A DNA stretch of 64,000 bases from Scyliorhinus canicula (lineage: Eukaryota): NCBI RefSeq assembly GCF_902713615.1, contig NC_052159.1, forward strand, positions 85,598,520 through 85,662,519, given 5' to 3'. Numbering within the stretch: the first letter of the stretch is position 1; the number at the start of each line of letters is the position of its first letter. This document shows positions 9,120 to 51,499 of this stretch, one piece after another. Both the position numbers and the translations under genes were made by a program. A model generated the notes under the pieces. It had not been told where the DNA came from, did not search any database, and saw only the letters and a list, made by a program, of their open reading frames with translations.

Positions 9120-10065
9120 CTTTCACAGGATATAGACATTGCTGACTAGGCCAGCATTTATTACCCACCCCTAATTGCCCATGAGAAGTTGATGCCAGCT
9201 ATTTGAACTGCTGCAGTCCACGTGGCGTTGGTACACCCACAGTGCTGTTAGGAAGGGAGTTACAGGATTTTGACCCAGTGCCAGTGAAGGAATGGTGATA
9301 TATTTCCAAGCCACGATGGTGAGTGGCTTGGAGGGGAACATGCAGGTGGTGGTGTTCCCATTTATTAGCTGCCTTTACCCTTCTAGTTGGTAGAGAGTCA
9401 TGGCTTTGGAAGGTGCTGTCAAAGGAGCATTGGATGAGTTGCCTCAGTGAGCTGCTGATATGGTACACATTGCTGCTACTGGCATCAGCGATGAAGGGTG
9501 TCAGTGTTTAAAGTAGTGGATAGTGTGCCAGTCAAATGGACTGCATTGTCCTGAATGCTGGCAAGCTACAAAGTCTTGTTGGAGCTGCACTCATGCAGGC
9601 AAGTGGAAAGGATTCCATCACAGTCCTGACTTGTGCCTTGTGGATGGTGATTGGCGAGTCATGAGATGGGTCAGAATTTGCTGCCTCTGACCTGCTCTTT
9701 AGCCACAATCTGGCTATGCCTGACGCAACGTCTGGTCCAGTTCAGTTTCTGCCCAAGGTACCTCCCAATGTCATGGGGAGATTATTAGATTTTCTTTTGT
9801 CGGGGATGGTCATTACTTGGCACTTGTATGGTGCGTTTGTTACTTGCCGCTTTTCAACCTGAGCCTGAATGTTGTTCAGGTCTTGCTGTAATGGACATGG
9901 GCTGCTTCAGTATTTGAGGATTTGCGAATTATAATGAAATTTGTGAGCAACCCCACTTCTAACCATATGATGGTGGAGAGGTCATTGATGAAGTAGCTGA
10001 AGGTGGTTGGGCAGAAGACGCTACCTGAGGAACTCCTGTAGTGATATCCTGGGACTGAAATGATT
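9120..10065 (-). mobile_element. 3' ~950 bp of the tRNA-headed LINE family, antisense
   Basis: Reverse complement is colinear with ~49850-50860. Confidence 0.85.
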
Positions 10066-10521
10066 GGTATTGGTTATCATACAAGTTAAATTGTATTGAA
10101 TTTATCATATAGTAATTGATTTGTCCTGTAAGGCTTAAAGGAATATTGGATCAGACGATACTTGTCACATTACAGAACACATCCATTTCCCTTTGCACTA
10201 CTAGCAGCATCCTACTCTTTGCCTACTCTTTGAAGTCATTCTCCTCACTGCACACTACCAATTGAAATTCTTGTGAGAATGATCATTCTGGTCTACAGTG
10301 TGCAACAGCCAGCATCATCTCAAGTAGCAACAGGCCCAGCAGATGGCAAAGAAAGGGTAAGAAGTTGGAAGTGTCCCTTTGGGGGAAGAAGATGGAATCT
10401 GTAAATTGTGGAGAAGAGCAATATTAGCATGAATTAGGGGTGTGAAGAGAGGGAATACAATGCAGTCTGAGCCTGGCAAGATGGCCCCTGCAGTAGGGTG
10501 AAGCGAATTACAAGGTACAAT

Positions 10522-11083
10522 TGTGATGGGAGAGTTGTTTTTGGACCCCCAAAATGTATCATAGAGTTCAACCAACCCCCACCTTTAATGGATTGTTGCT
10601 TTTGAAGCACACGGCTTGTTCCCCAGGTGTAGTATTATAATTATGGACATGTGGTTTTTAAAACAAAACGATGTTTATTCCATGAATTTAAATTAACCTT
10701 TATAATAAAAATTGGATCTCTTAACACCCCTTACTTCAAAGATAACTCCGAAAATAATACAACACTACCCAATCCTGCAAACTGTTCCTTTACACATCCA
10801 AAAGACTTAACAAATCCTTCAAACAGAAGCACATTAGATTTGTATTCAATACTGAGACCTTTTTACAATTCCGATTTCACCAAAGGATTAAGAGATAGTC
10901 CTTCATGGCAGAGATCACCAGCAATGCAGCTCACAGCCACACCCAAGCTTTCTTCAAATTCTTCCCTAAAAGCAGAAGTGAGCTCAGCTCCCCCCCGTGA
11001 CATCACTTCAATAATATGATCAGCTCATTTCTTAAAGGTACATTTCTTAAACATCCAATTCTTAAAGGCACTCTCACATGCCG
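10522..11083 (-). mobile_element. Solo LTR of the Gmr1-like family found at 40033
   Basis: Aligns along its length with 40033-40632. 4-bp TSD CAAT (10518-21, 11084-87). Confidence 0.85.
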
Positions 11084-11519
11084 CAATGGTTACTCTAACT
11101 TGGGAGTGATTGTTAGATATGGGAGGTGATGGTCGAACTGATTTGTTAATTTTAAATCTGAAATTGATAGATTTTTGTTAACCGAAGGTTTTCAGGGATA
11201 TGGGTAAAAATGGAGTTCATTCACTGGTAAGCCATGATCTCACTGAAAGGCAAAACAGGTTTGAGGGGCAAAATGATCAACTCCTGTTTAACATTAGCAT
11301 CAATGTATTGCTTTAATGTGAATTTCTCCAAGGGAGTATACTGTCTTGTAGAGATACAGTAAAAATTGCATGCCTTTGATATTAGTGTTCCCCTTTGGGA
11401 TTTCATGTATGTGAATTATTTTCATTTTCTGCTTTGATTGTGGTGGTCACTCTCCTTGCGCAAGTAAAACTTAATAAACTTGACTGCGTTGTTACCCATT
11501 ACATTTTCAATCTAAGTCT

Positions 11520-11848
11520 TACTCGGAGGTCGAAGCTTTCGACACCTGGCACTGGCAGCCTGCCACCCTGGCACTAGCACCGTCGCAGTGCCAAACTGAT
11601 ATCCTGGCAATACCACCTCCATTTAAAAATGACGTTCTAATCTCTCTGCACTGGAGATTTTCGGCAAATGGGACCCCCTCAGTGCAGAAAACGGGACGAA
11701 ATGGGGCCACGGCCAGGCATTCCCTGCTGAGGCCCCGTTTCCAATGGTGTTACATAGCGTTGTGTTTCTCGGCACTGCGAACCCCGGGAAACACGCGGCT
11801 AAACGCGCTCTCTATGGGACATAGTTCCAATTTGGTACAATCACATCC
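11520..11848. mobile_element. Harbinger-type MITE fragment
   Basis: tggcactggcagcctgccaccctggca motifs and a caatcacatcc end shared with 51750-53049. Confidence 0.5.
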
Positions 11849-12623
11849 ATCAAATTGTGGAATTGTTTTGAAGTTTTTGGAAGCTTTTGCTAGTTCTGAA
11901 TTTGCATATGTGTTGATAGCAGAGCCAGAAGGTGTCTCATTCTTTTGATGCTAAGGCCTGAAGAATTGCTGAATTTGTGATATTTAGCCCTCTGACTAGT
12001 ACTTTTTTCTCCGCAGTGATTTATTTAACCTAAAAATTATTAGTTAGAGCTAAGAATGCTTGCTTAAGCAGTGTATTGCACAGGGGAGTTCTGTGGAAAA
12101 AGTAGTGGGGTTAAAAGGGAACTTTGTGGATTAAAGAATTCACCTGGAAACCGAGCTATAATGTGAGGTACCCCACTATAGGAATGCTTTGTTTATTAGG
12201 GTGTGAGGATCTTTCTTTAATGGCTGGACTGCATAAAGTGCTCCCTAATGTGTGCCTCCAGTACATTTTTTACATGGCTCAAGAGATGAGAGTTTTGGGA
12301 CGAAGCAAAAACTTACAGGAAGACATTCTGTAAACTTACAGGAAACAGGCCAGAATGTAATTGTGCACAAACTGCTGGGTTATTTAGTGCTTCCTGCCTG
12401 TCGACAAAAGACAAAGAACTTCACTTAATTATCAGAGTGGAATTTTTTCAAAACTGCTTCCATTCATACACTGAATCCATTTTTCTTGGTCTGTCAGGAA
12501 CCCACTGGTATAATCATGGCATCATTAGCTCAAGTCTATTGACAAATATTTTCTACAGATGACTCAAATAACTGGCTGATGAATACATAGGGGTTCTTTC
12601 ACTTTGTTCTCAGATTCAAAAAA

Positions 12624-13195
12624 TAAAGATTTGCATTTATGCAGCACCTTTCATGATGACAGGATAACTCTTAAGTGTTTTTTATACCCAATGAAATACT
12701 TTTTTTCGATAAATTTAGAGTACCCAATTAGTTTTTTCCAATTAAGGGGTAAATTAGCATGGCCAATCCACCTACCCTGCACAGGGGAGAAGGTGCAAAC
12801 TTCACACGGACAGTGACACAGAGCCGGGTTTGAACCTGGGACCATGGTACCGTGAGGCGGCAGTGCTAACCACTCTGCCACTGTGCTGCCCATTGAATTA
12901 CTTTTTCAAGTATATAACTGTTGTAGGAAAAGAAACAAAGTAATTCATACATTTTAAGCTCCCACTTGTGGCATTGTGATATTGGCCAGATAACCTTCCA
13001 TGCTCCTCCTCAGAATAGTTTCGTGGGATTTTTTTACATCGAGTGGAGAGGGCAGCTGACGGCACCTTTGGCAGAGCAGCACTCCATCAGCACTGCACTG
13101 GAGGGTCTGCCTGGATCATGCCACTCAGGTTCTCAAGTGAGATTTGAACACAACTCTCCGAGGCAGAGCTCTAACAATTGAACCACAGCTGATAC
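12624..13195 (-). mobile_element. DeuSINE with nested V-SINE (12710-12891, -)
   Basis: Reverse 3' end aaagatttgcattta..., Deu domain, and head ending aaccacagctgatac. Confidence 0.7.
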
Positions 13196-13320
13196 TAAAG
13201 TATCTCAGTAGAAAATAGAATCCCAGTCGTCACTGCATTACCTAGGAGAGGCCAAACAATTACTTGCATCCCAATTTATAAATGAGGTGGAGATGCCAGC
13301 ACTGGACTGGGGTGGGCACA

Positions 13321-13667
13321 GTAAGAAGCCTCACAACAGCAGTTTCTTTGAAAGATTTAGAGTACCCAATTCATTTTTTCCGTTTAAGGGGCAATTTAGT
13401 GTGGCCAATCCACCTAGCCTGTACATCTTTGGGTTGTGGGGCGAAACCCACATAAACATGGGGAGAATGTGCAAATTCCACATGGACAGTGACCCAGAGC
13501 CGGGATCAAACCTGGGACCTCAGCGCCGAGAGGCAGCAGTGTTAACCCACCGCCACCGTGCTGCCCCAACATCGGGTTAAAGTCCAACAGGAAGGAGCAG
13601 CGCTCTGAAAGCTTGTGATTTCAAATAAACCTGTTTGATTTTAACCTGGTGTAGTGAGACTTCTTAC
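13321..13667. mobile_element. Fold-back Penelope-like element with nested V-SINE (13356-13567, -)
   Basis: Inverted arms gtaagaagcctcacaac..ggttaaagtccaacagg / cctgtttgattttaacctggtgtagtgagacttcttac, with truncated hammerhead gaaggagcagcgctctgaaagct. Confidence 0.7.
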
Positions 13668-13797
13668 AATTTATAAATGTCACTGTGGTGTCCGCAGTTT
13701 TTAAAGGGGAATGTTGCGTTATAGATTTTTAAACAAGCACCTTTCACTAATTCAGTACCAAAGGTCAAGCAGTCTGAAATGAGTTTGCTTTTTGAAT

Positions 13798-14440
13798 GCT
13801 GGGCTCAGTGATAGCACACTTGCTTTTGAGTCACAGCTTTATCTTTTAGATGAGATGTTAATTCTGGGTCCTGTCTGCTCTCTCAGGTAGACATGACCGG
13901 TTTGATGGCACTAATTGAGGAAGATAAAGGTAGTTCTTGTGATGTCCTGGTCCACAAATATGCGGCAAGCAACACGATTAGAACAGTATAATTTGGTCTT
14001 TGATATTATTGCTGTTTGTTGTATCTAATAATAATCTTTATTGTCACAAGTAGGCTTACATTAACACTGCAATGAAGTTACTGTGAAAAGCCCCTAGTCA
14101 CCACATTCCAGCGCCTGTTCGGGTACACAGAGGGAGAATTCATAATGTCTAAATTACCTAACAGCACGTCTTTCAGAACTTGTGGGAGGAAACTGGAGCA
14201 CTCGGAGGAAACCCACGAAGACACGGGGAGAACGTGCAGACTCTGCACAGACAGTGCCCAAGCCTGGAATTGAACCTGGGACCCTAGAGCTGTGAAGCAA
14301 CAGTGCTAACTTGTGTGACAATTGGTTGTCTCACTTCCCCATGTTGCAAGTATTAGCCCACTTCAAGAAATACTTAATTGGCTGTGAAGCAATTTGGAAC
14401 ATTGAGATTGTGAAAGACACTATATAAATACAAGTCTTTA
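13798..14440 (+). mobile_element. DeuSINE with nested V-SINE (14027-14312, -)
   Basis: Deu domain gatgagatgttaa..ctgtctgctctctcagg and 3' end cactatataaatacaagtcttt. Confidence 0.75.
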
Positions 14441-15309
14441 AATTTACCAATATGTTCCATTCAAGCAAAGCATTCCGGGAACGTGGATTGTTATATTTTA
14501 CGTGTAGAAACTTTACAGAATTTGGGGGATCTTCTTTTCAGTATTTTGTTTGCAAGGCACTTTTTTCTGGCATGTTTTTTAGCACAGCAGCAGGCCACAA
14601 GCTAGCTGTCGGAATGCTAACCTGTTGAGAATTCATTGCATTGAGGGGAAGCAGTGTTTTTCCCTCGTCGTAGAAAAAAGGCATTGTTTTAACTTGGATT
14701 TCTCCATACACAATAGCAAGTGGTTTAATTCTTTTGTTTAATCTCCTGGGAGCAGTACTTCTTAATTTGCCATTGATGATTGGTTGTTGACAGTTGAATA
14801 ATACTAGGTTTATATTTAAAAATGCAATTTAAGTGAGTTGGTGGAATAGCACCAGGACATACACTATTGTATATGTGGAGCGAAGGTGATATTAGTTACA
14901 GCCCACATAGCTGCTTCCTCATCCAATTTGAGGGTAGCATGTATTAATGGTGTATTAATGAAGTAGCTTTCGTAACTAAAACAAAAGCAAAATACTCCTG
15001 GAGATGAAAGAGTTAGCTATTTGAGAGAAAATATTTCAAATCGTAGTGTTGGTTTATTTATTCGATTTTGCAGAGCTTCTCTGTTCAGTCCGCATGCATG
15101 ACCCCAACTTATTTCCCCAGTGCTGGTCTGTATCTTGTTCTCAGGCTGTGCTTTGAGACATCACTAACTTTTGTTTTGCTATTAACACATTCTGCTGTCT
15201 TACTTTCAGACAACGCTGACATTGATTCTTCTATTAATAATGCTTTGTTCCTTCCAACCTCCATCCCTACTCTCTATCTCTTTCGCTCCATAACATCTTT
15301 GTAATTTAG

Positions 15310-15343
<34 letters not shown>

Positions 15344-15350
15344 TCGCCCT
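15310..15350. repeat. (CT)n microsatellite
   Basis: Seen directly. Confidence 0.9.
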
Positions 15351-15552
15351 CCACCTCTGACCTTCCCTTTTTGTTCGATCTGATGCTCCCCCCTTTTTCT
15401 ACAGCTTAAAACCCATCACATCTCTGCCTCTGCTCAGTTTTGAAGATTGAAACGTTAATTTGTTTCTCTCTGCACAGGTGCTGACACATCTGCTGAGCTT
15501 TTCCAGCACTTTCTTTTATTATTGCAATTCTATTTCAGCAGCAAACAAAATT

Positions 15553-17500
15553 TTGGATTTGGATTTGTTTTATTGTCATGTGTACTGAGGTACAGTGAAA
15601 AGTATTGTTCTGCGTGCAGCTCCAACAGATAATTTAGTACATGAAAAGAAAATAAGTAATAGGGCAACACCAGGCACACAATGCAAACACATAGACACTG
15701 GCACTGGGTGAAGCATACAGGAATGTCATATTAATCAGATCAGTCCATAAGAGAGTTGTTTAGGAGTCTGGTAACAGCGAGGAAGAAGCTGTTTTTAAAT
15801 CTGTTCGTATGTGTTCTCAGATTTTTGTATCTCCTGTTCGATGGAAGAAGTTGGAAGAGTGAGTAAACCGGGTGGGAGGGGTCTTTGATTATGCTGCCCG
15901 CTTTCCTGAGGCAGCGGGAGTTGTAGATAGAGTCAATGGATGGGAGGCGGGTTTGTGTGATGGACTGAGCAGTGTTTCCGACTCTCTGAAGTTTCTTGCG
16001 GTCTTGGGCCGAGTAGTTGCCATACCAGGCTGTGATGCAGCCAGATAGGATGTTTCTATGGTGCACCTGTAAAAGTTGGTAAGAGTCAATATGGACATTG
16101 AAATTTCCTTTGTTTCCGGAGGAAGTATAGGCGCTGTTGTGCTTTCTTGGTGGTAGCGTCGTGTGGGTGGACCATGACAGATTTTTGGTGATGTGCACAC
16201 CTAGGAATTTGAAGCTGTCAACCATCTCCACCTCAGCCCCGTTGATGCAGACAGGAGTGGCTGCAGTATTTTGCTTCCTGAAGTCAATGACCAGCTCTTC
16301 AGTTTTGCTGGTGTTGGTCGTTCTGGGTGAGTGAGCTTAACACTCAATTTGGCTCTGTTTCTTTTCTAAGCTCTGGAGTCGCCAGGTGTCGTTAAGACAC
16401 CGCCACAAGCTTCAAGGTGAAGTTCAAAGCAATAAAACCATACACCAATTAGTAAGTCCAAACAACTGAGTTTATTATAATACAATTATAATAACAACCC
16501 ATGCACACACTAAAAGGATTAAACTTATTCCTACCGCTAAATAAACTAATACTTATCTCGAAGGAACTGCTGGGTCAGGGAACAAGGCCTCTTGCTCTGC
16601 TCTGGTCTGCAGACTTCAGGTTGGTATCAATTAAAAGGGGTCAGGAGTGCCTATCCCTGGTAGCGATCGTTGTGAGGCACTTACTTGTTGGCGGCTGCTG
16701 TTCGAACCCTCTCCTCTCTCTCGTTCAAGATCTTCTTGACAAAAGCTGGTCCACGGAGGAGTGTTGGTCAAAGAGAGAGAAGGGCTGGATCAGAAGACTG
16801 AACCATGTGTGGGACCTGTCTTTTATAGGTCCCAGGGGATCTGCGCCCCTTTGGGCAGACTCCCTTACCTGCTTGGAATCAATTAGGTCTCTTCCCAATC
16901 GATATGTTTGAACCCCCCAATCATGGGGCAGTTCCTCGGTCACTGGGGCGGTTCTTGGGACTTATTGTTTTGGGCTTCTCTGGCGCCGAAAAGTCTGGCC
17001 TTCCATTCAATGTATCGATCTGTGTTTAACTTGTTTCCATTGTATCTGGGAATCGCCTGGTATCGCCTCATTAGTATGTTAACTGGTTTCTTTTCACAGT
17101 GCTGTCTGGTTTCTGCAGCAGTCAAAACTGGTTTCTGCAGCCGTCCCAATATACAAGTGCTTTGCAAGCTGCTTGCTTTACAACATGTCCATTTTCCCTA
17201 CATTCCTTGCAATCTTCCATTTTGTGTTGGGCAGTGGCCACCCCAGGTGGCTACACTGGCATTGAGAGAGAAATTGTTGTCATTACACCACCCCACTAGG
17301 TTCTCTATCTCCCTCCTATATTCTGATTTGTCGTTGTTCGAGATCCGACCCACTACGGACGTGTCGTCAGCAAACCTGTAGATGGAGTTGGAGCCAAATT
17401 TTGCCACGCAGTCTTGTGTGTATAGGGAATGTAGTAGGGGGCTAAGTACGCAGCCTGTGGGGCCACGGTATTGAGGACTATCGTGGAGGAGGTGTTGTTG
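15553..17500 (-). mobile_element. 5'-truncated Rex1/Babar-clade LINE split by a solo LTR
   Basis: RT C-terminus: IYRFADDTSVVGRI (17198-17407) and VDSFKFLGVHITKNLSWSTH..RFKNSFF (15740-16231). (ccaaat)n tail. Confidence 0.85.
16312..17255 (-). mobile_element. Solo LTR (944 bp)
   Basis: TG...CA ends with a perfect 4-bp TSD CTGG, interrupting the Rex1 RT. Minus-strand TATAAAA (~16821-27) and AATAAA (~16471-76). Confidence 0.85.
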
Positions 17501-45110: not shown

Positions 45111-46099
45111 GAATGAATAAAAATGCTTAAAACCAATTAACATAAAGTTCTTATTTGTGTAGTGGTGGTGCATTGTATGAAAAAAACGCTATAGCTCGGG
45201 TAATACAAGTCCAGGTTTATCAAGTTAATTTATAGATCCATGTTATAGCTCCTGGAAACAGTTAATCAACTGTAGCTAGTTTAAACTGGTATTCACTTAC
45301 TGTTATGTTTGACGACATTTGCCACCTCAACTTAATTTTGTTCACCTTTATGTTATTTGGCAGAACAGACGTGAATTGTTTTCCCTGCTGTAGGACGCGC
45401 AGTGCGATGCAAGGGAAGCAGATAAAGCTGTTTCCTTGTTATTGTTGGTGAATTGCAGGGGTAGCTGCAGTGGTGTTGTGCCGATGGGAGGCAGCTCAAC
45501 AAAGTTGTTCATGCTAATAATGAAATTTGTGAATTGACACACATTTTCTTTCTTTTAGCTTTGGCCTTGAAGATTTCATTGAAATCAATGTCAGATATAA
45601 GAGGGTTGTGCGTTTTCACACAACTGGTTTAGCCAGTGAGTAGCTCAGCTGCAGAGACCAGAAAAAATTACAAGTCTGATCTCCAGTCTGTGCAGGATGT
45701 CAGTAATGATACAAAAATTTCCTCGGCACCCCTGGTTAAGAAGTGGAAAATTGACCTGCATTCCTGATTCCCTGGTTCCTATCTAACACTGGAAGCGCAT
45801 GTCTGGTTACTAGATGCTGTGGTTCTTTGCCCCCAACCTTCCCCAACACCCTTCATTTGTAGTGAACATTCATATCCAGAGAATCACTTAGAAGAAAAGT
45901 GTATGATGCCCATTAAATATATCGCAATGATAAGTCGATATCCTTAGGATAAGAGAATAGGGGGAGGTGGTGGCATAGTGGTATTGTCACTGGACCAATA
46001 ATCCAGATATAAGAGGTTTGTGTGTTTTCACACAACTGGTTTAGCCAGTGAGTAGCTCAGCTACAGAGACCAGAAAAAATTACAAGTCTGATCTCCAGT

Positions 46100-47055
46100 G
46101 TACTCTACTCCCTGTACATACACGACTGCATGGCAAAACTTGGTTCCAACTCCATCTACAAGGTTGCTGACGATATGACCATAGTGGGCCGGATCTCGAA
46201 TAACAATGAGTCAGAATACAGGAGGGAGATAGAGAACCTAGTGGAGTGGTGTAACGACAACAATCTCTCCCTCAATGCTGGCAAAACTAAAGAGCTGGTC
46301 ATTGACTTCAAGAAGCAAAGTACTGTACACACCCCTGTCAGCATCAACGGGACCGAGGTGGAGATGGTTAGCAGTTTCAAATTCCTAGGGGTGCACATTT
46401 CCAAAACTCTGTCCTGGTCCACCCACGTCGACGCTCTCGCCAAGAAAGCACAACAGCGCCTATACTTCCTCAGGAAACTAAGGAAATTCGGCATGTCCAC
46501 ATTAACCCTTACAACTTTTACAGATGCACCATAAAAGCATCCTATCTGGCTGCATCACAGCCTGGTATGGCAACTGCTCGGCCCAGGACCGCAAGAAACT
46601 TCAGAGTCGTGAATACCGCCCAGTCCATCACACAAACCTGCCTCCCATTTATTGACTCCATCTACACCTCCCACTGCCTGGGGAAAGCGGGCAGCATAAT
46701 CAAAGATCCTTCCCACCCAGCTTACTCACTCTTCCAACTTCTTCCATCGGGCAGGAGATACAGAAGTCTGAGAACACGCACGAACAGACTCAAAAACAGC
46801 TTCTTCCCCACTGTTACCAGACTCCTAAATGACCCTCTTATGGACTGACCTCATTAACATTACACCCTGTATGCTTCATCCGATGCCAGTGCTCATGTAG
46901 TTACATTGTATATCTTGTGTTGCCCTATTATGTATTTTCTTTTCTTCCCTTTTCTTCCCATGTACTTAATGATCTGGTGAGCTGCTTGCAGAAAAATACT
47001 TTTCACTGTACCTTGGTACACGTGACAATAAACAAATCTAATCCAATCCAATCCA
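46100..47055 (+). mobile_element. 5'-truncated Rex1/Babar-clade LINE
   Basis: ORFs 46130-46848 (KTKELVIDFKK..KKAQQRLYFLRKL), (aatcc)n tail and target repeat aatccaga. Confidence 0.88.
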
Positions 47056-48947
47056 GAGATCCAGGATAATGATCTGGCAACCCGGGTTTAAATCCCACCA
47101 CGGCAGTTGGTGGAATTTAAACTCAATAAAAATATAGGGAAAAGAAAATCGAATGATAACCGTGAAACCATTGTCAATTGTTGTAAAAACCCATCTGGTT
47201 CACTAAGTTTTTTACTTGGTCCGACCTACATGTGACTCCAGACCCACAGCAAAGTGGTTGACTCTTAAATATCCTCTAAAATGGCCTAGCAAGCCACTCA
47301 GTTGTATTAAACCGCTATAAAAACACAAAATAGAACTGAAACTGAACGGACCACCCGGCATTGAACCAGACACTGGAAATGGCAACGGTAACCCCAGCCC
47401 TGTCTACCCTGCAAAGTCCTCCTTACTAACATCTGGGGGCTTGTGCCAACGTTGTGAGAGCTATCTCAGACTAGTTAAGTAACAGCCTGACATAGTCATA
47501 CTCACAGAATTATACCTTTCCGACAATATCCCAGAAAGCACGATTACCATTCCTGGATATGTCCTGTCTCACCGGCAGGACAGACCAAGCAGAGATGGTG
47601 GCACAGTGGTATACAGTTGGGAGGGAGTTGCCCTGGGAGTCCTCAACATCGACTCTGGACCCTATGAAGTCTCATGACTTCAGGTTAAACGTGGGCAAGG
47701 AAACTTCCTGCTGACTACCACATACCGGCCACCATCAGCTGATGAATCAGTACTTCTCCATGTTGAACACCATTTGGTGGAAGTACTGAGGGTGGCAAGA
47801 ATGCAGAATATGATTTGTGTGGGGGACTTCAATGTCCATCACCAAGAGTGGCTCGCTAATACCACCTAAATAACATTGCTGCTAGACTGGGTCTGCAACA
47901 GGTGGTGAGGGAACCAACAGGAGGGAAAAACATACTTGATTTCATCCTTACCAATTTGCTTGCTGCCGATGCTTCTGTCCATGACCATATCGGTAGAAAT
48001 GACCACTGCACTGACCTTGTGGAGACAAAGTCCCGTCTTCCCATTGAGGATACCCTTCATCGTGTTGTGTGGCTCTACCACCGTGACAAATGGGATGGAC
48101 TTCAAACAGATCTAGCAACTCAAGACTGGGCATCCATGAGGCGCTGTGGGCCATCAGCAGCAGCAAAATTGTATTCAACCACAATATGCAATCTCATGGT
48201 CTGGCATATCCCCCACTCTACAATTACCACCAAGCCAGGGAATCAACCCTGGTTAAATAACGAGTGCAGAAGAGCATGCCAGGAGCAACACCAGGCATAG
48301 CGAAAAATGAGGTGTCAACTTGATGAAGCTACAACGCAGGACTACTTGTGTGCCAAACAGCATAAGCAGCAAGTAATAGACAGAGCTAACCGATTCCACA
48401 ACCAACGCATCAGATCTAGGGTCTGTCATTCTGCCACAACCAACCATGAATGGTGGTGGACTATTAAACAACTCACTGGAGGAGGAGGCTCCACAAATAA
48501 CCCCATCCTCAATGATGGAGGAGCCCAGTATGTGCATAAGACAAGGCTGAAGCATTCACACCAATCTTCAGCCGGAATGCTGAGTGGATGATCATCTTTG
48601 ACTCCTCCAGAAGTCGTCAGCATCACAGATGTCAGTCTTCAGCCAATACGATTCACTCCACGTGATGTCAAGAAACAGCTGAAGGCACTGGATACTGCAA
48701 AGGTTATGGGTCCTGATGACAATCCGGCAATAATACTGAATACTTGTGCTCCAGAACTTGCCACACTCCTAGCCAAGCTGTTCCATTACAGCTGCAACAC
48801 TGGCATCTACCCGGCAATGTGGAAAAATGCCCAGGTGTGTCCTGTACACAAGAAACAGGACAAATCCAACCCACCAATTACTGCCCTATTAGTCTACTCT
48901 CCATCATCAGCAAAGTGATGGAAGGATTTATCAACAGTACTTTCAAG

Positions 48948-49557
48948 GGCAGCACGGTGGCCTAGTGGTTAGCACAACCGCCTCACGGCGCTGAGGTCCC
49001 AGGTTCGATCCCGGCTCTGGGCCACTGTAGAATATAGAACAGTACAGCACAGAACAGGCCCTTCGGCCCTCGATGTTGTGCCGAGCAATGATCACCCTAC
49101 TTAAAACCACGTAACCCGTATACCCGTAACCCAACAATCCCCCCATTAACCTTACACTACGGGCAATTTAGCATGGCCAATCCACCTAACCCGCACATCT
49201 TTGGACTGTGGGAGGAAACCGGAGCACCCGGAGGAAACCCACGCACACACGGGGAGGACGTGCAGACTCCGCACAGACAGTGACCCAGCCGGGAATTGAA
49301 CCTGGGACCCTGGAGCTGTGAAGCATGCTACCGTGAGGCCCTATTAGTCTACTCTCCATCATCAGCAAAGTGATGGAAGGATTTATCAACAGTACTTTCA
49401 AGGACTGTCCGTGTGGAGTTTGCACATTCTCCCCGTGTCTGCGTGGGTTTCGCCCCCACAACCCAAAAATGTGCAGAGTAGGTTGATTGGCCACGCTAAA
49501 TTGCCCCTTAATTGGAAAAAATAATTGGGTAATCTAAAATAAAAAAATAAATAAAAA
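48948..49557 (+). mobile_element. Short-tail V-SINE split by an antisense HE1-like SINE (49028-49335)
   Basis: TSD aacagtactttcaag (48933-47, 49558-72). Confidence 0.88.
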
Positions 49558-51499
49558 AACAGTACTTTCAAGCGGCACCAACTCTGCAATAACCTGCTCA
49601 CTGACGTTCAGTTTGGCTTCCGCCAGGCTCACTCAGCTCCTGACCTCATTACAGCCTTGGTTCAACATGGACAAAAGCGCTGAATGCCAGAGGTGAGGTG
49701 AGAGTGATTGCCCTTGACATCAACGCAACATTTGACCGAGTATGGCATCAAGTAGCCCTAGCTAAACTGGAGTCAATGGGAATCATGGGGAAAACTCTGC
49801 TGGTTGGAGTCATACCTGGCACAAAGGAAGATGGGTTGTGGTTGTTGGAGGTCAATCATCTCAGCTCCAGAACATCACTGCAGGAGTTCCTCAGAGTAGT
49901 GTCTTAGGCCCAACCATCTTCAGCTGCTTCATCAATGACCTGCCTTCCATCATAAGGTCAGAAGTGGGGAAATTTGCGGATGACTGCACAATTTCATCAC
50001 CATTCGTGACTCCTCAGATAATGAATCAGTCCTTGTCCAAATGCAGCAAGATCTGGACAATATCAAGGCTTGGGCTGACAAGTGGCAAATTACATCCGTG
50101 CCACACAAGTGTCAGGCAATGGCAATCTCCTTCAAGAGAGGATCTAAACATCGGCCCGTGACATTCAATGGCATTACCATTGCCAAATCCCCCACAATCA
50201 ACATCCTGGGGGTTACCATTGATGAGAAACTGAACTGGACTAGCCATATTAATACTGTGACTACCAGGGCAGGTCACAGGCTAGAGATCCTATGGCGATT
50301 AACTCACCACCTGACTCCCAAAGCCTGTCCACCATCTACAAGGCACAAGTCATGAGTGTAATGGAATAGTCTCCACTTGCCTGGATGAGTGCAGCTTCAA
50401 CAACATTCAAGAAGCTCAACACCCTCCAGGCCAAAGCAGCCTGCTTTTCTGCTCCTCCTTCCACAAACATTCAAACCCTCCACCGCCGACGAATAGTGGC
50501 AGCTGTGTGTAACATCTACAAGAAGCACTGCAGTTACTCATCAATGTTCCTGAGACAACACCTTCCAAACCCACGACCACTACCATCTAGAAGGACAAGA
50601 GCAGCAGATACCTGGGAACCCACCACCTGGCGGTTCCCCTCCAAGTCACTCACCGCCCTGACTTGGAAATATATCGTCGTTCCTTCGCTGTCGCTGGATC
50701 AAAATCCTGGAACTCCTTCCCCAACAGCAAAGTGGGTGTACCTACACCAAAAGGACTGCAGCGGTTCAAGAAAGCAACTCACCACCACCTTCTGCAGGGC
50801 AACTAGGGATGGGCAATAAATGCTGGCATAACCAGCGATGCCCAAATCCTGTAAATTAATTCAAAAAAAATGAGGGAGAGAGAATACGAGAGAAGAAATT
50901 GTCAGGGAAATTGAGGAAGGGAAAATATTCTTGTGAAGCAGCAGGTTGACTATTTGTCCAACCTTCTCGACATCCAAATAACAGTGATTGCCTTCCTGCT
51001 CTTTACATATATTGTTCACCACTAGCATAGGAACTCTGACCCCCAAAAAGAACTGCATAAGAATTTACTATTGTCCAAAAAGGAAACGCGTCTTTATGAT
51101 TTCAGGTCAGCAAATGTGCTTTCCAAATTAGAAAACTAGTTATGTGGAGGTGATTTGGGCTGGAGGGGGGAGGCATGCGGAATGGAATTGTGCAGCAAAG
51201 TTATGCCACATATGTATGAAAGTATGTGCTCAGTTATTGACTCAGAAGCCACATGGATTTTTCACATGATTTTGAAATGCATTTTGAATTGCAGTGGGCC
51301 TGATTCTGCCTAAATTTGTTCACTGAAAAAACTTTGCAGGTGTAATAGAGGAATCTTTCACTTTCTGTCTTGGTGAATATGAACGATTTTTTCAGTCACG
51401 TTGCTACAAATAATTTAATATTTTAACTAAAACATATAACTGTCAAATGTTTCACCAAAATAAATTTCATAATTGTTTCTATATTCCTGGCTGCAGAAT

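Follow-up and report, generated by a model that had tools for sequence, protein, structure and literature searches.

The stretch analysed here, called the window, comprises 64,000 nucleotides (nt) of the Scyliorhinus canicula genome (contig NC_052159.1, positions 85,598,520 to 85,662,519 of the forward strand), and all positions given are those of the window. Its plus strand carries, at 45961-50870, a decayed full-length copy of a long interspersed nuclear element (LINE) in a cartilaginous-fish-type genome, with a single open reading frame (ORF) for an apurinic/apyrimidinic endonuclease (APE) and a reverse transcriptase (RT). After subtraction of three later inserts the element measures ~3.25 kb, and it starts with a tRNA-like head of the type found in short interspersed nuclear elements (SINEs). 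The element, the sequences nested in it and the two copies of its target-site duplication (TSD) are arranged as follows.

45946-45959, no strand: upstream TSD copy, AGGATAAGAGAATA, which matches 50873-50886 at 11/14 positions
45961-46007, plus strand: first part of the head, with the A box at 45971-45981 and the 5' terminus of the repeat
46008-47057, plus strand: insert nested in the head, made of 96 nt copied from DNA a little upstream and a Rex1-like 3' fragment, with AATCCAGA repeats as bounds
47058-47105, plus strand: second part of the head, holding the B-box-like motif (47085-47095) and pairing with 47106-47118 in a hairpin
47106-47280, plus strand: body of the 5' untranslated region (UTR), in common with an abundant SINE and including a module at ~47172-47268, from read depth and read exits
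47281-47440, plus strand: LINE-specific leader or N-terminal extension of the ORF, with candidate start codons at 47281 and 47379
47423-48947, plus strand: APE endonuclease domain followed by a linker and the beginning of the RT, decayed by stops and frameshifts, from Pfam, translations and relatives
48948-49559, no strand: V-SINE-type block nested in the RT, 612 nt, with a 13-nt TSD at 48935-48947 and 49560-49572
49560-50806, plus strand: remaining RT (Pfam RVT_1) and C-terminal region, ending with the stop codon TAG at 50804-50806 and holding the sole sense-strand run of four T, at 50445-50448
50807-50870, plus strand: short 3' UTR, with AATAAA at 50815-50820, a terminal A-run at 50863-50870 and a tail in common with the SINE
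50873-50886, no strand: downstream TSD copy, AGGGAGAGAGAATA

The opening letters of the element are GGGGAGGTGG, and they lead into a perfect A box (11/11, TGGCATAGTGG), the first base of the element being located 10 nt upstream of this box. Between 325 and 502 public contigs diverge exactly at 45961, where their preceding letters are A/T-rich and unlike one another. At the same position the contig depth (the summed depth of public contigs along the element) climbs from ~3, the single-copy depth of the upstream flank, to thousands. The head is broken at 46007/47058 by a 1050-nt insert with AATCCAGA repeats at its edges, of which 46101-47046 matches, by BLAST within the window, a Rex1-like copy at 15553-17436. 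Other copies, in public contigs and reads of the same organism, join 45999 straight to 47050, and therefore the head is continuous in them. The Rex1 insertion described in an earlier note on this DNA, made from the letters alone, is thereby confirmed, as is the A box that it placed at 45971. Its B box at 47085 corresponds to a B-box-like motif, GGTTTAAATCC, in agreement with the consensus at 9/11 positions.

When rejoined, the two parts of the head fold into a cloverleaf of 92 nt that resembles tRNA-Ile(aat) and has a long extra arm, and ARAGORN reports it only at a relaxed threshold; neither ARAGORN with default settings nor Rfam calls a tRNA in the head. Thus, the element carries the 5' tRNA-type head with A and B boxes that defines a tRNA-derived SINE (SINE2), but it is not the short (100-700 nt) non-coding unit that the same class comprises, being ~3.25 kb long with an APE-RT ORF. 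Also, the B-box/T-arm region (47085-47122) is predicted to pair with a downstream GGTGGAATTTAAA segment in a strong hairpin, whose energy in the full copy is -20 kcal/mol. Both heads of the window, the second one being at 58975-59010 on the minus strand, keep the paired core of this hairpin (CCCACCA / TGGTGG).

Head, leader, ORF and tail were reverse-transcribed into the genome as one unit. The TSD copies stand at both ends of the element, one directly before the head and the other just after the A-run. A match of 11/14 at the same geometry occurs in 0.1% of random window pairs and in 0.3% of shuffled flanks (P = 0.001-0.003), so the degenerate TSD that had been proposed to bracket head and tail is real. 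Moreover, the SINE-like part passes into the LINE part with neither a SINE tail nor an A-run in between. The TSD at both ends, the lack of an internal tail or A-run and the divergence of the flanks at 45961 therefore indicate that the head and the LINE entered the genome as a single complementary DNA (cDNA).

The reading frame begins 180-280 nt past the end of the head, whichever ATG is taken, and this leaves no room for an ORF1. With the APE starting near 47425, no ORF1 fits between it and the head, in agreement with the earlier note. The first residue of a predicted protein from another proteome (P0158) corresponds to the ATG at 47281, and this protein continues into the APE without indels, its residues 1-67 aligning to 47281-47466. 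For a second protein, P0151, the N-terminus agrees by eye with the translation from the ATG at 47379, the tblastn alignment covering it only from residue 29 (47468). The junction between leader and APE is also present in other copies. For example, record 21 of contig X2 covers 47286-47570, the ENA contig L002 is colinear from the last part of the leader into the first part of the APE, and P0151, P0153, P0155 and P0158 translate leader and APE from further copies.

Some further features of this region can be mentioned. From ATG 47281 onward, the frame of the window copy is free of indels and has four stops. In other copies (P0158 and P0155) the stretch in the APE frame upstream of the endonuclease encodes a basic run, RPRHRKRQRQ in P0158, which is possibly a nuclear localisation signal. 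The leader was also considered as an internal ribosome entry site. Its fold is mildly better than that of shuffled sequences (z = -2.2), mostly owing to the hairpin of the B-box region; a value dominated by the head hairpin gives no evidence for such a site, and this candidate was rejected.

The coding region is that of an APE-type LINE, with APE followed by RT in one ORF according to Pfam and to the frame path. Among the ORF pieces, Exo_endo_phos_2 scores 28.1 bits on 47678-47866 (cutoff 27.4) and RVT_1 scores 29.6 bits, at its cutoff. The frame path runs over ~915 codons, with several stops and frameshifts, to the TAG at 50804-50806. The remaining marks of this class are present as well: a TSD, a 3' tail conserved in three other copies (3' fragments), 5'-truncated sister copies and a depth that grows toward the 3' end. 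Relatives are found at 60-93% identity as unnamed fragments, and a representative protein search for them gave only fragmentary or chimeric predictions. One word-index protein search for relatives returned no match, and two metagenome pattern scans for further copies were empty.

The depth profile along the element is far from uniform. It amounts to ~42,000 on the head (corrected for bin overlap), ~150,000 on the module, ~3,100 on the LINE-specific leader (47304-47422), 10,000-16,000 on the APE and 30,000-60,000 near 48800, thus rising toward the 3' side. Reads and contigs that exit the element at 47267-47271 go on, as loose ends, into ..CAAGGGCAATTAGGGATGG.., a sequence that sister copies show to be the 3' tail of this LINE. 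This profile and the reads that pass from module to tail show therefore that the genome holds an abundant SINE made of head, body and tail. In public reads, the first ~300 nt and the last ~55 nt of the element are the two ends of this far more abundant SINE. Also, in one RNA contig the module is directly preceded by sequence resembling that found after the second head. LINE and SINE are, then, partners with both ends in common. This link is new relative to the earlier note, which missed that the head and body are the 5' part of a commoner SINE.

Based on these data, we lean, with modest confidence, towards the head being a heritable part of the 5' UTR of this LINE lineage. The 5' UTR of this copy starts with the tRNA-derived head and the body of the abundant SINE, and the last ~55 nt of the element are the SINE tail. 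In this reading the SINE is in effect the two ends of the LINE, and the head would probably have been gained when the RT changed templates, from LINE to SINE RNA, within the stretch of 5' UTR that both have in common. The composite starts where the SINE RNAs made by RNA polymerase III (Pol III) start, 10 nt before the A box. By default, Pol III would transcribe only the SINE, its use by the LINE being possible.

Some observations weigh against a heritable head. The head-bearing copies inspected as sequence number one, and the second head of the window is not linked to a LINE. Moreover, the depth on the LINE-specific leader is 3-4 times below that at the start of the APE, and therefore other 5' ends, including ones with ORF1, could exist in the LINE family.

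The second head copy (58958-59079, minus strand) consists of the same tRNA-like head plus ~60 nt, and is 3'-truncated or diverged beyond this point. It is opposite in strand to the neighbouring LINE fragment (59395-60087, plus strand), with ~315 nt of unrelated sequence between them. The recurrence of the head that had been reported at 58920-59078 is hence correct as regards the head copy itself, but not as a second unit of head and LINE. This copy is a separate SINE fragment. Twin-priming was considered for the inverted head and is ruled out by the 315 nt of unrelated sequence before the LINE fragment.

That head and body are the 5' part of a SINE opens a simpler route to a headed LINE, namely template switching onto SINE RNA. 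It also leads to an alternative in which the head is not inherited. In this case, a headless LINE RNA would be made by RNA polymerase II (Pol II), and the RT would switch within the shared 5' UTR onto a Pol III-made SINE RNA and copy it to its 5' end; the headed copies would be dead ends, arising from one event or from several. The 5' region of the LINE is outnumbered 10-50 times by the SINE, with which it has ~200 nt in common, and a chimeric cDNA requires no long Pol III transcript to account for a 5' end exactly of the SINE type. This route also fits the model in which SINE bodies derive from LINE 5' UTRs (PMC5786205). Moreover, single-event chimeras in which a LINE is preceded, within one TSD, by sequence from a Pol III RNA are documented for L1, as U6/L1 (PMC6789731) and tRNA/L1 (PMC13174262). 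However, these are one-off products on truncated L1, the tRNA part being mostly antisense halves, whereas here ~300 nt of SINE stand in sense orientation on a full-length ORF. Also, no full-length copy without a head was encountered, although a search for such copies could not be made. A dead-end chimera is a plausible account and the main rival, although we do not consider it the probable one.

A different possibility, which is a special case of the heritable head, is that Pol III makes the full 3.3-kb coding RNA from the A and B boxes of the head, the sense strand being kept free of runs of four or more T (T4+) and the uncapped RNA serving as template and being translated independently of a cap. 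The 5' end located 10 nt upstream of a perfect A box agrees with this proposal and, given a heritable head, the RNA would most simply be started at the first base of the element by a type-2 promoter. The scarcity of T-runs deserves closer attention here. The 2805-nt ORF part has one sense-strand T4+, as the earlier note counted, and this run (50445-50448) is absent from three sister copies, being then copy-specific. In the leader, a T6 is observed at 47208-47213, where other copies have ~37 extra letters (between 47205 and 47212), and therefore this run stems from a copy-specific deletion. Because both T-runs are copy-specific, the ancestor may have had no T4+ run at all. Nonetheless, for the 5' 1.9 kb the ancestral state is judged from this decayed copy alone, in which an ancestral T4 would often be lost, so that a T4-free ancestor is unsupported for that part.

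Compared with two other LINEs of the window, the element is poor in T-runs, with 0.35 T4+ per kb against 5.3 in the Rex1-like LINE and 7.1 in the CR1-like LINE (53971-54960). This difference of 15-20 times is descriptive. The TT dinucleotide is also 35-50% rarer than in these two LINEs. However, the count is not below what composition and codon use predict: dinucleotide shuffles give 3.18 +/- 1.58 T4+ (P(<=1) = 0.14), synonymous-codon shuffles 2.87 (P(<=1) = 0.17) and codon permutation 3.55 (P(<=1) = 0.10). Also, runs of four or more A are likewise under expectation (8 against 11-14), and the codon TTC is used 18 times against 5 for TTT. The claim that the sense strand had been purged of TTTT is not confirmed, then, since the density of runs is below that of the two other LINEs but their number is not below the ~3 expected from dinucleotide and codon-aware shuffles. 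The scarcity is compatible with read-through by Pol III and equally with a family-specific composition and codon use.

In an oligo-dT library the SINE module reaches a depth of 200-450 and the LINE-specific leader one of ~1, and reads lie on both strands, as expected of copies embedded in host transcripts. Among oligo-dT reads and RNA contigs, the only RNA data covered, no transcript from the head into the ORF is seen. Moreover, the tail has an AATAAA, and the processivity of Pol III is treated as limiting such elements to ~1.3 kb or less, LINEs being taken as transcribed by Pol II (PMC10886601). We therefore regard transcription of the whole coding RNA by Pol III as unlikely, and it is similarly doubtful that a Pol III-transcribed LINE lineage exists with the partner SINE as its internal-deletion form. 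In this way, the tRNA-type head, the short leader, the single APE-RT ORF and the TSD-bounded unit of the earlier interpretation are retained, whereas its proposal of selection for readability by Pol III, with cap-independent translation, does not yet stand, with T4 runs within composition, a misoriented second head, leader RNA that is near nil and a leader fold only mildly better than that of shuffles.

Finally, two independent neighbouring insertions, a SINE beside a 5'-truncated LINE, would fit a window dense in SINEs in which this head occurs a second time on its own (58958-59079), but they are very improbable, as the SINE-like part has no tail and A-run of its own, a single TSD encloses the head and the LINE tail, and the SINE-like sequence runs unbroken into the leader that joins the APE in other copies.

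The element is close to several known systems. The partnership of LINE and SINE is of a known kind, and the SINE head on a LINE copy is a new variation on it. In the pairs SINE2-1_ACar/Vingi-2_ACar and Ceph-SINEs/RTE, the SINE carries a piece of the LINE 5' UTR together with the LINE 3' tail, which is termed a bipartite origin (Kojima 2018, PMC5786205). The abundant SINE described here likewise has the 5' UTR module and the last ~55 nt in common with its LINE. However, in the published pairs the tRNA head is confined to the SINE, and a Pol II promoter is assumed at the start of the LINE, whereas here the LINE copy itself begins with the head. On the other hand, retrotransposons with Pol III promoters are represented by SINEs and by TRIMp3 (Cassandra, Helenus and Ajax; PMC10886601). 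These share with the element a promoter derived from a small RNA at the start of the transcribed unit, but all of them are non-coding and 1.3 kb or shorter, in contrast to a ~3.25-kb unit that encodes APE-RT. Also, R2 is co-transcribed with rRNA by Pol I and freed by a ribozyme (Eickbush and Eickbush 2010, as cited in PMC5786205). This sets an example of a coding LINE with an RNA other than a capped Pol II product, although it involves another polymerase, read-through with self-cleavage and a site-specific element.

The candidate clade of the element is the CR1/L2 group. The organization of the coding part also has counterparts, with one APE-RT ORF behind a short 5' UTR. Some fish L2 elements are LINEs of a single ORF, without ORF1. 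The RTE clade has the same organization, as cited in PMC13174262. None of these single-ORF LINEs is described with a tRNA-type head, and the comparison does not imply placement of the element in either clade. In the literature searches, which left Repbase and Dfam outside, no autonomous LINE with a tRNA-type head was found, and the head and tail motifs searched as text gave likewise nothing.

SINE heads and LINE 5' ends are usually held apart, with Pol III for SINEs and Pol II for LINEs. If the head is heritable, a headed LINE lineage whose SINE is its own two ends would be a concrete system for the birth of SINEs from LINEs or for the recapture of SINE parts by LINEs, and would also bear on the origin of conserved SINE bodies and on the support of a coding retrotransposon by Pol III. 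If transcription by Pol III were true in addition, the element would be the first retrotransposon with a protein-coding RNA made by that polymerase. On the other hand, if the head is only a recurrent product of template switching, the element would still be a clean case of LINE-SINE recombination.

Some minor observations concern the 3' part of the element and its nested inserts. At the 3' end of the LINE two overlapping frames are open, one of 149 codons (50370-50816) and one of 71 codons (50591-50803). A scarcity of stop codons in the T-poor sequence may be all that keeps the longer one open, and the shorter one holds a C-terminal segment, ..RRSF..WNSFP..FKK.., which may resemble the conserved C-terminal motif of LINE ORF2 proteins. 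The sister copy at 59395-60087 is 5'-truncated at the equivalent of 48436 and joins the equivalent of 48656 to that of 50392, with ~1.7 kb missing.

In the insert that splits the head, 46004-46099 is a 96-nt copy, 96.9% identical to the single-copy sequence at 45592-45687, ~370 nt upstream of the insertion site. Located at the 5' junction of the Rex1-like insert, it looks like a local fill-in or a template jump during 5' end joining.

V-SINE matches are numerous across the window. HE1 is a V-SINE whose partner LINE is HER1 (PMC3747384), and an identity of the element with HER1 was considered; it was rejected because the tails of V-SINEs in the window (e.g. 49480-49550) have no BLAST similarity to the LINE tail. 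Within the V-SINE-type block nested in the RT, an inverted V-SINE-like piece interrupts a direct V-SINE behind its head (49028). Also, the LINE letters 48883-48948 are duplicated perfectly (66 nt) inside this block, at 49338-49403. As the element is old, a perfect duplicate in it suggests that a rearrangement took place recently, that gene conversion occurred or that the assembly is at fault here.

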